This document shows, piece by piece, positions 20,230 to 21,962 of a stretch of DNA of 34,615 bases. A program made the position numbers and the translations under genes. Numbering within the stretch: position 1 is the stretch's first letter; each line of letters starts with the position of its first letter. Location of the stretch: the NCBI GenBank assembly GCA_025603075.1, contig MU626461.1, positions 1 to 34,615 of the forward strand. Reading direction: 5' to 3'. The notes beneath the pieces were generated by a model. The model was not told the DNA's origin, made no database searches, and worked only from the letters and a program-made list of their open reading frames with translations. The DNA is from Neoconidiobolus thromboides FSU 785. Taxonomy: Eukaryota; Fungi; Entomophthoromycota.

Positions 20230-21962
20230 ATGAAAGAGAAGCGAGCAACAAGAAAGAAAGTGAAGAGCTCACAAAACACTGATTGGAGTAAAGTAAGGTA
20301 TCCTACATGTCCAACTAAAAGAAAGTAGAAATAATGACATAAACTCTAGTGCTTCGCATTATGTAGGCTACGTTGAAGATGGAGAATCCATCGAAGCCAT
20401 TATGAAAAAGTTCGAAGAGTTAGATCGACTAAAGGAAGAAGTAACTTCAAAAAAGAGCAAAGTCCAAGAGGGCGAAGATTCGGAGCCCGAGGTTTATGGA
20501 TTAGCAAATCTTTTTGAACCTGAACCAAAGGTTAAATCTATACCTTCTGAAATCAAGGTAAATAATTTACACTTCGTTTTATGAGCATATTCAGTTTTAG
20601 TAGGAAAACGTTGAGCTATCTCAGGAACAGCTAGAAGAACTATTTGTAAGGACCTCAGTATTTACTTTAGAATCCGCTGCAGAGCAACTAGATCCTTTAT
20701 CAGAATGGTGGCAAATACAAGATAGTGAGTATAACTCTGAAATAGATATGGATGAGTAAGCAGTTTTCGAGCATGACTAATAATAAGCTGACTTTTATAG
20801 TGATTATATGGACTATGGAGATGATGAATGGGAGGAAGAGATTAGCTCCAAAACCAAACGAAGTAAATCAAGTAAAGGTACAAGAGGAGGGGTTAAGGAT
20901 CGAAGCAAACAAAGGGAGCTTGTTATGAGGAGATATAAAGAGAATCAGTTACAAGACAGCTCAGGAAATATGCTAGCCATGTTAAAAAAAGTTCAGCTTA
21001 CAGATCCCTCCTTACCTACTTATGTAAAGATACCCCCAGCACCTATCCCGTTGTCTTGGGCTCGTCGTATCACCCCGTTGTTTAGGCCAAAGGAGGAAGC
21101 TAGAAAGTAAAATTTTTACTATGCGGTATTATAGTTATTAATAAGGCTTAGTTTTAAAATAGATATTTTAAATGAGTTTGATAAAATCAAAAAATTAGGT
21201 AATGAATTTCAGGCCATCCTTATGGATCCACCGCTTTTGTTAGATGATGAAGAAATGAGTTTCAATACCTCACAGAGTCACCGTAAACCAATAAGAATGA
21301 AAGAATTTGTAATAGTTACTTTAGTTTATTGAGTAAAATATCTCATTTATTTAAATTATAGAAAAAATTGAGGATCCCAGAAATAATTAAATGTGGGTTT
21401 TTAATGATATGGATAGAAAAACATCATTTGAGTGAAATATTGAAACAATGCATCGAAGGGTGGAAATTTCGATATGTTGAAAATGTAGCTTGGGTTCACT
21501 ATAATTTAGATAACACCATTCATAAAAAAGATTCTAAAATACCACCCAAACTTCAGGATGAAAATGGTACTAAAGGATATTTTAAATCCTCAAAAACAAC
21601 TTTACTTATTTTCCGTATTGGTGGTGATATTGATATAAGACATCAAAGATCTCCTGATGTTATTTTTGATCATACAAGGCCAAGTTTGGATGAAGGTAAC
21701 CAAAGAATTCATTTCCCTGCTTTTTTGTTTTTTAAGCTATGTTTATTTAGATCCTTTTAACATTTATAAAGCTTGTAATCATCAACCTAAATTTATTTAT
21801 GACCTGATTGAAACCTTATTGCCAATACCAGTAGGGCATAAACATAATCAATCCCCGTTTAGGTTTCTAGAACTTTGGGCTTCTCCCTCCAGGTTCAAGA
21901 CGGCTACTACTCCTTGGATTTCGATTGTTAATCAAGAGCAATCTGCTGAAGATATTGAATAA
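20230..21962 (+). CDS. MT-A70 family protein, MTA9/AMT6-7-like subunit of the ApT DNA 6mA methyltransferase complex, multi-exon
   Basis: The spliced C-terminal half has FQAILMDPPL, LRIPEIIKCGFLMIWIEK, FRYVEN, GYFKSSKTTLLIFR, IRHQRSPDVIFD, IYDLIETLLP, FLELWAS and WISIV. This order matches recalled ciliate MTA9 motifs (GILFIWSEK, YIENF, YFKK...LLMFR, LRHQRTSDVVF, VYQMIETLLP, MMELFAS, WISV). Intron boundaries near 21107-21151 are inferred. Confidence 0.8.

Follow-up and report, generated by a model that had tools for sequence, protein, structure and literature searches.

A predicted AMT6/7 (MTA9)-family subunit of the ApT 6mA methyltransferase in the fungus Neoconidiobolus thromboides

Background

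AMT1 and AMT6/7 proteins co-occur across eukaryotes, and each of the 15 tested species that encode AMT1 was found to carry symmetric ApT 6mA close to the start sites of active genes (PMC12695648). In the Tetrahymena complex, MTA1 is the catalytic subunit and connects to p1 and p2, whereas MTA9, in which motif IV is eroded to NALW, does not bind SAM, and mutation of the eroded motif leaves activity unchanged (PMC9852454). The p2 subunit, which the ciliate complex also uses, was not found in Mucor (PMC11258239) and is reported from some early-diverging fungi (PMC12019607). On the fungal side, two-hybrid assays show that Mta9 interacts with Mta1, and mta9 is essential; the Rhizopus microsporus protein PHZ11537.1 has been named Mta9_A, and a duplication of Mta9 has been described in Entomophthoromycotina (PMC12019607). 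A further comparison is with human METTL14, the partner of METTL3 in RNA m6A, which is a non-catalytic MT-A70 protein, as predicted for the protein described here, and shares with it the fold and a degraded motif IV ending in leucine.

The gene analysed here comes from Neoconidiobolus thromboides FSU 785 (assembly GCA_025603075.1) and lies in a window, i.e., the whole stretch of DNA under analysis, of 34,615 nucleotides (contig MU626461.1, positions 1 to 34,615). It is an expected, ordinary member of the 6mA machinery already published for early-diverging fungi and introduces no new principle; a protein filed as hypothetical gains a name and a likely role.

Results and discussion

Structure of the gene

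A gene of seven exons, spliced by GT..AG rules with six introns of 39–54 nt, is predicted from the sequence at positions 20230–21962 on the plus strand of the window. The exons sum to 1443 nt, that is, 480 codons and a TAA stop. The window is AT-rich (GC 27%), and in the list of open reading frames the locus is split into fragments of 32–130 aa. An exhaustive protein search started with exon 6 identifies KAI9292256.1, a 480 aa protein of N. thromboides FSU 785 titled in GenBank "hypothetical protein K502DRAFT_332502", with 100% identity over this exon. The in-frame pieces of all seven exons are exact consecutive substrings of the same protein, with one residue left for each split codon. The exons were searched singly, and the public protein was used for all full-length analyses.

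Exon 1 (20230..20297) starts with ATG, encodes a basic N-terminus (residues 1–22 plus 2 bases; an exact substring of KAI9292256.1) and ends at a GT donor. Exon 2 (20350..20557) carries the conserved HYVGYVEDGES..AIMKKFEELDRL motif, from 20357–20389 onward, and exon 3 (20604..20755) the conserved QLEELFVRTSVFTLES motif, from 20628. Exon 4 (20801..21106) encodes an acidic/basic linker and the conserved RYK..DPSLPTYVKIPPAPIPLSWA segment directly ahead of the methyltransferase domain. The MT-A70 domain begins in exon 5 (21146..21308), where motif IV reads DPPL (21225–21236, residues 272–275), and its core occupies exon 6 (21362..21695), with GFLMIWIEK, YVENVAW and, at 21638–21667, RHQRSPDVIF. Exon 7 (21751..21962) contains IETLLP (21807–21824), ELWAS (21870–21884), WIS (21915–21923) and the TAA stop codon (21960–21962). 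All exons are on the plus strand. The acceptor of intron 4 is set at 21145 in this gene model; 21151 is an alternative, and conservation does not decide between the two.

An intron 1 at 20288–20366 was considered and rejected, because the public protein places this intron at 20298–20349, as does the conserved SxSHYVGYVEDGES motif; the motif SASHYVGYVEDGES, restored by the public gene model, is conserved in all relatives. The preliminary description, made from the DNA letters alone, had claimed a spliced gene with a series of MT-A70 motifs that is broken up among the open reading frames. The seven-exon model and the match to KAI9292256.1 confirm this, and the motifs that it listed (RHQR..DV.F, IETLLP, EL.AS and WIS) are all located in exons 6 and 7.

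Assignment to the AMT6/7 (MTA9) family

The Pfam MT-A70 family (PF05063) is identified with E = 5.8e-7 when exon 6 is searched alone and with E = 2.8e-10 for the full protein, in which Pfam detects no domain besides MT-A70. In a search against solved structures, exon 6 matches MTA9/AMT7 (E = 2.6e-8) and MTA9-B (2e-6), followed by METTL3 (3e-3), METTL14 (0.055) and MTA1 (0.3), with no hit to METTL4; the sole match of exon 7 is the MTA9-B chain 8xyl_B (E = 1.2e-3). For the full protein, the ranking is MTA9-B (8xyl_B, 2e-12), MTA9/AMT7 (6.6e-8), MTA1 (1.5e-5), METTL14 (9e-5) and METTL3 (1e-3), again with no hit to METTL4. The best solved-structure matches are thus the Tetrahymena thermophila MTA9/AMT7 and MTA9-B chains (7yi8_A, 9o6k_A, 8xyl_B and 9vu6_B). 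A profile built from 50 fungal and nucleariid (Holomycota) homologues, with ciliates left out, scores MTA9 and MTA9-B at 137 bits each, MTA1 at 91, METTL14 at 57, METTL3 at 46 and METTL4 at 19.

The motifs RHQRSPDVIF, IETLLP, ELWAS and WIS align with counterparts in MTA9 and MTA9-B, and the patterns GFLxIW.EK, YxEN, RHQR(S/T)xDxxF, IETLLP and ELxA...GWIS are common to both Tetrahymena proteins and the N. thromboides protein. The exhaustive search with exon 6 yields 250 cluster representatives at E<=1e-3; of the 83 listed matches with a length of 300 aa or more, 74 contain RH[QE]R. The alignment of the 50 homologues has 38 invariant columns and many more that are nearly so. In the AlphaFold2 (AF2) model of the protein, the mean pLDDT is 66 and the core exceeds 90; a Foldseek search with this model matches all MT-A70 dimers alike, so that the fold does not discriminate between families.

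The subfamily call rests on the ranking of the scores and on published trees, our own tree (below) being one of AMT6/7-family members. Membership of the gene in the AMT6/7 (MTA9) family is shown by these sequence comparisons. The preliminary description had held that the motifs fit MTA9 better than METTL3, METTL14 or METTL4, and both the structure-search ranking and the ciliate-free profile bear it out. The grouping with METTL14/KAR4 or METTL4 that it had named as its refutation is not observed: MTA9/AMT7 and MTA9-B are top by a wide margin, and the protein clusters with Mta9_A. A METTL4/DAMT-1 identity is contradicted by the score of 19 bits and by DPPL in place of DPPW, and the METTL4-type gene of this genome is a separate locus (C236, below). 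The AMT2/5 family is marked by DPPW together with a C-terminal ZZ zinc finger (PMC12695648), whereas motif IV is DPPL here and MT-A70 is the sole Pfam domain.

Fungal relatives

A word search finds 236 relatives. The 120 matches listed come almost entirely from early-diverging fungi, the rest being two eukprot entries, one beetle-labelled record and unnamed metagenome/Logan proteins; the closest among them are from Massospora (49% identity) and Entomophthora (44%). The Rhizopus microsporus match (P0171; 37% identity, 94% coverage, E = 1e-71) falls in one 90% cluster with PHZ11537.1, the protein named Mta9_A. An IQ-TREE phylogeny built from 47 members of the family joins the N. thromboides protein to Massospora and Entomophthora (SH-aLRT 100) within the fungal group that contains Mta9_A, and its branching tracks fungal taxonomy. 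At the level of sequence, the gene is shown by these results to be orthologous to fungal Mta9_A.

The full-length layout is that of R. microsporus Mta9_A, with the N-terminal HYVGYVEDxES and QLEExFxRTSxFT motifs followed by an MT-A70 domain that contains DPP plus an aliphatic residue or Phe, RHQR and IETLLP. The Entomophthorales copies differ from Mta9_A in a longer loop after YVENVAW, which in the N. thromboides protein amounts to 13 additional residues. Rhizopus has two Mta9 copies (A and B), whereas one was found in the N. thromboides genome: neither a profile search nor a search with the Entomophthora DPPW paralogue detects a second. One candidate paralogue, on contig C127 (exon 6 search, E = 0.15), was rejected as an ArfGAP/UBA-type gene; the same search of the genome gives a weak match on contig C61 (E = 0.4).

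The DPPW paralogue just mentioned, KAJ9049938.1 (P0067) of Entomophthora muscae, belongs to the RHQR family as a second, distant member, with a full DPPW and without a ZZ finger; its counterpart was not found in the N. thromboides genome. Several further representatives of the RHQR family (P0097 and P0132 among them) also retain DPPW, so that motif IV is not eroded in every member of the family.

Partner genes in the same genome

The D-P-P-W codon pattern occurs at seven sites in the 24.6-Mb genome, in a search that would miss a DPPW interrupted by an intron or falling into an assembly gap. Two of the seven, on contigs C60 and C236, have an MT-A70 context.

The C60 gene (G000:C60:51930-53572; L011 1000-2642, plus strand) has seven exons and reads FDVILMDPPWQL, NGFIFIWV, SERRGQSQKP and LEIFGRKNNLRDYWVTIGNEL, in addition to carrying DPPW. 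Against solved structures, its exon 4 matches MTA1 (E = 1e-10) ahead of METTL3 (2e-3), and its exon 6 matches MTA1 (5e-8) ahead of METTL3 (0.12), with SERRGQSQKP identical to the MTA1 sequence. By these matches, the C60 gene is of the MTA1/AMT1 type; the preliminary description had suggested a check of the genome for MTA1, and this gene provides it. The absence of MTA1, which that description had counted towards a refutation, is thus not observed. A Pfam six-frame scan of the genome recovers the Mta9-type gene and the C236 gene only. The practical lesson is that six-frame domain scans miss the catalytic partner on C60, each of whose seven exons is shorter than 66 codons.

The C236 gene (L001 859-2114, plus strand) encodes, in three exons, a METTL4/DAMT-1-type MT-A70 protein of about 370 aa with DPPW, HSKKP and ELFAR...SWGNE. 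Its top structure match is 7cv6 ("Methyltransferase-like protein 2", E = 3.6e-10), which we take to be the Arabidopsis METTL4 structure. A Dus-like gene adjoins it, tail to tail.

No METTL3-type DPPW gene is seen among the seven sites. The predicted inventory of the genome is thus a single gene each of the AMT1, AMT6/7 and METTL4 types, with no METTL3-type gene visible, and the C60 product is accordingly the sole candidate for the catalytic partner. A Myb scan identifies roughly 15–20 Myb-domain loci in the genome.

Motif IV and the predicted loss of catalysis

An exon-wise alignment with the C60 protein shows that the N. thromboides protein keeps Asp-Pro-Pro in motif IV, has Leu in place of the aromatic residue and carries the RHQR insertion of its family. 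Throughout the fungal clade, the residue after DPP is Leu, Ile or Phe; within the clade, P273 and P274 do not vary, and D272 is conserved in at least 90%. The motif is less eroded than the NALW of Tetrahymena MTA9. In METTL14, motif IV is EPPL, and the fungal DPP-Leu/Ile/Phe is closer to this form than to the ciliate NALW. Also of practical interest is that the fungal subunit retains DPP-Leu and a conserved N-terminal module that is not seen in the ciliate structures (below).

The survival of Asp-Pro-Pro raises the alternative that the protein is itself an active adenine methyltransferase, e.g., a de novo DNA 6mA enzyme. Conservation of D272-P273-P274 across the clade and the full DPPW of some RHQR-family members are compatible with such an activity. 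However, motif IV of this protein ends in Leu, and across the fungal clade it ends in Leu, Ile or Phe. The place of the SERRGQSQKP segment of MTA1 is taken by DHTRP...NHQPK; this is the region of S332, one of the SAM contacts of MTA1 (PMC9852454), which lies inside the MTA1 span 314–348 aligned to exon 6 of the C60 gene. AMT2 and AMT5 are described as the de novo enzymes (PMC12077518), and the ZZ finger that marks the AMT2/5 family (PMC12695648) is absent from the N. thromboides protein. In Tetrahymena MTA9, moreover, the eroded motif can be mutated without change of activity (PMC9852454). An active enzyme is accordingly an improbable reading of this gene. The missing aromatic residue and the behaviour of the family argue that the protein should be non-catalytic, and Leu in motif IV, the replaced SERRGQSQKP segment and the properties of Tetrahymena MTA9 together point to the non-catalytic partner in a dimer of Mta1 and Mta9.

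Predicted role in ApT 6mA

Taken together, the observations make it very probable that the gene encodes the AMT6/7 (MTA9) subunit, predicted to be non-catalytic and to pair with the MTA1/AMT1 protein from C60 for maintenance of ApT 6mA. On the model of the Tetrahymena complex and of the Rhizopus microsporus proteins, this subunit would not transfer methyl groups itself and would pair with the catalytic MTA1/AMT1 in a butterfly-shaped heterodimer. Together with a Myb/homeobox-like p1, this dimer would maintain adenine methylation on both strands at ApT after replication, and clusters of ApT 6mA would lie in active genes, downstream of their start sites. The Mta1-Mta9 heterodimer in N. thromboides is inferred from these systems, and symmetric ApT 6mA from the published co-occurrence of AMT1 with this modification. 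A literature search found no 6mA measurement for N. thromboides or any Entomophthorales; the Mta9-type gene and the AMT1-type gene on C60 predict symmetric ApT 6mA on active genes in this insect-associated fungal lineage.

A different partnership would follow if the protein were the METTL14/Kar4-type non-catalytic partner of a METTL3/Ime4 RNA m6A writer rather than a DNA 6mA subunit. Its DPPL does resemble the EPPL of METTL14, the METTL14 match is significant (9e-5 for the full protein, 57 bits with the profile), and the fold search does not separate the MT-A70 families. Nevertheless, MTA9 and MTA9-B score 80 bits above METTL14 (137 vs 57 bits) with a profile that contains no ciliates, and RHQR..DV.F and IETLLP are common to MTA9 and MTA9-B, whereas RHQR and IETLLP are not seen in METTL14. 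Furthermore, the METTL14 system includes METTL3, whereas none of the seven D-P-P-W sites of the N. thromboides genome belongs to a METTL3-type gene and the only ones with an MT-A70 context are the AMT1-type and METTL4-type genes. A role in RNA m6A is therefore very unlikely, slightly more so than the active enzyme considered above, and the AMT6/7 (MTA9) subunit remains the preferred reading.

That the gene is a decaying or unexpressed copy is hardly credible, given that none of the seven exons is interrupted and every splice site is canonical, that the 38 columns invariant across the 50 homologues are retained, and that searches of the genome found no further copy.

The N-terminal module

The first ~120 residues of the protein (P0001, KAI9292256.1 residues 24–120; window positions 20350–20700) form a bipartite conserved module, the first part of which follows the pattern S..HYVGYVEDxESxEAIMKKFEELE and the second the pattern LxxxQLEExFxxTSxFxVxS. 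The module is conserved in AMT6/7-family proteins of fungi, nucleariids and green algae. It corresponds to no Pfam family, and a profile of its motifs matches no solved chain, those of Tetrahymena MTA9 and MTA9-B included. The AF2 model shows helices in the module, with moderate confidence. A speculative and rather doubtful reading is that the module constitutes a functional domain of AMT6/7 proteins that has so far escaped description, e.g., a site at which p1 or chromatin docks in lineages that lack p2; in that case, the ciliate structures would represent the ancestral complex incompletely.

Unusual records among the homologues

One of the relatives (P0044) is labelled as coming from the beetle Zophobas morio. 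In the tree, it groups with a single unnamed cluster representative; both fall outside the fungal clade, in an unresolved part shared with nucleariid-type sequences, and the record may represent contamination of an insect assembly by a microbial eukaryote.

In some public gene models, the Mta9 homologue is fused to a cytidine deaminase, peptidyl-tRNA hydrolase or gamma-glutamylcyclotransferase domain. Such models are found in Coemansia/Dipsacomyces (P0238, P0244, P0252, P0253, P0256 and P0259), Smittium (P0037) and Paraglomus (P0161); they are probably merged neighbouring genes and not true fusions.
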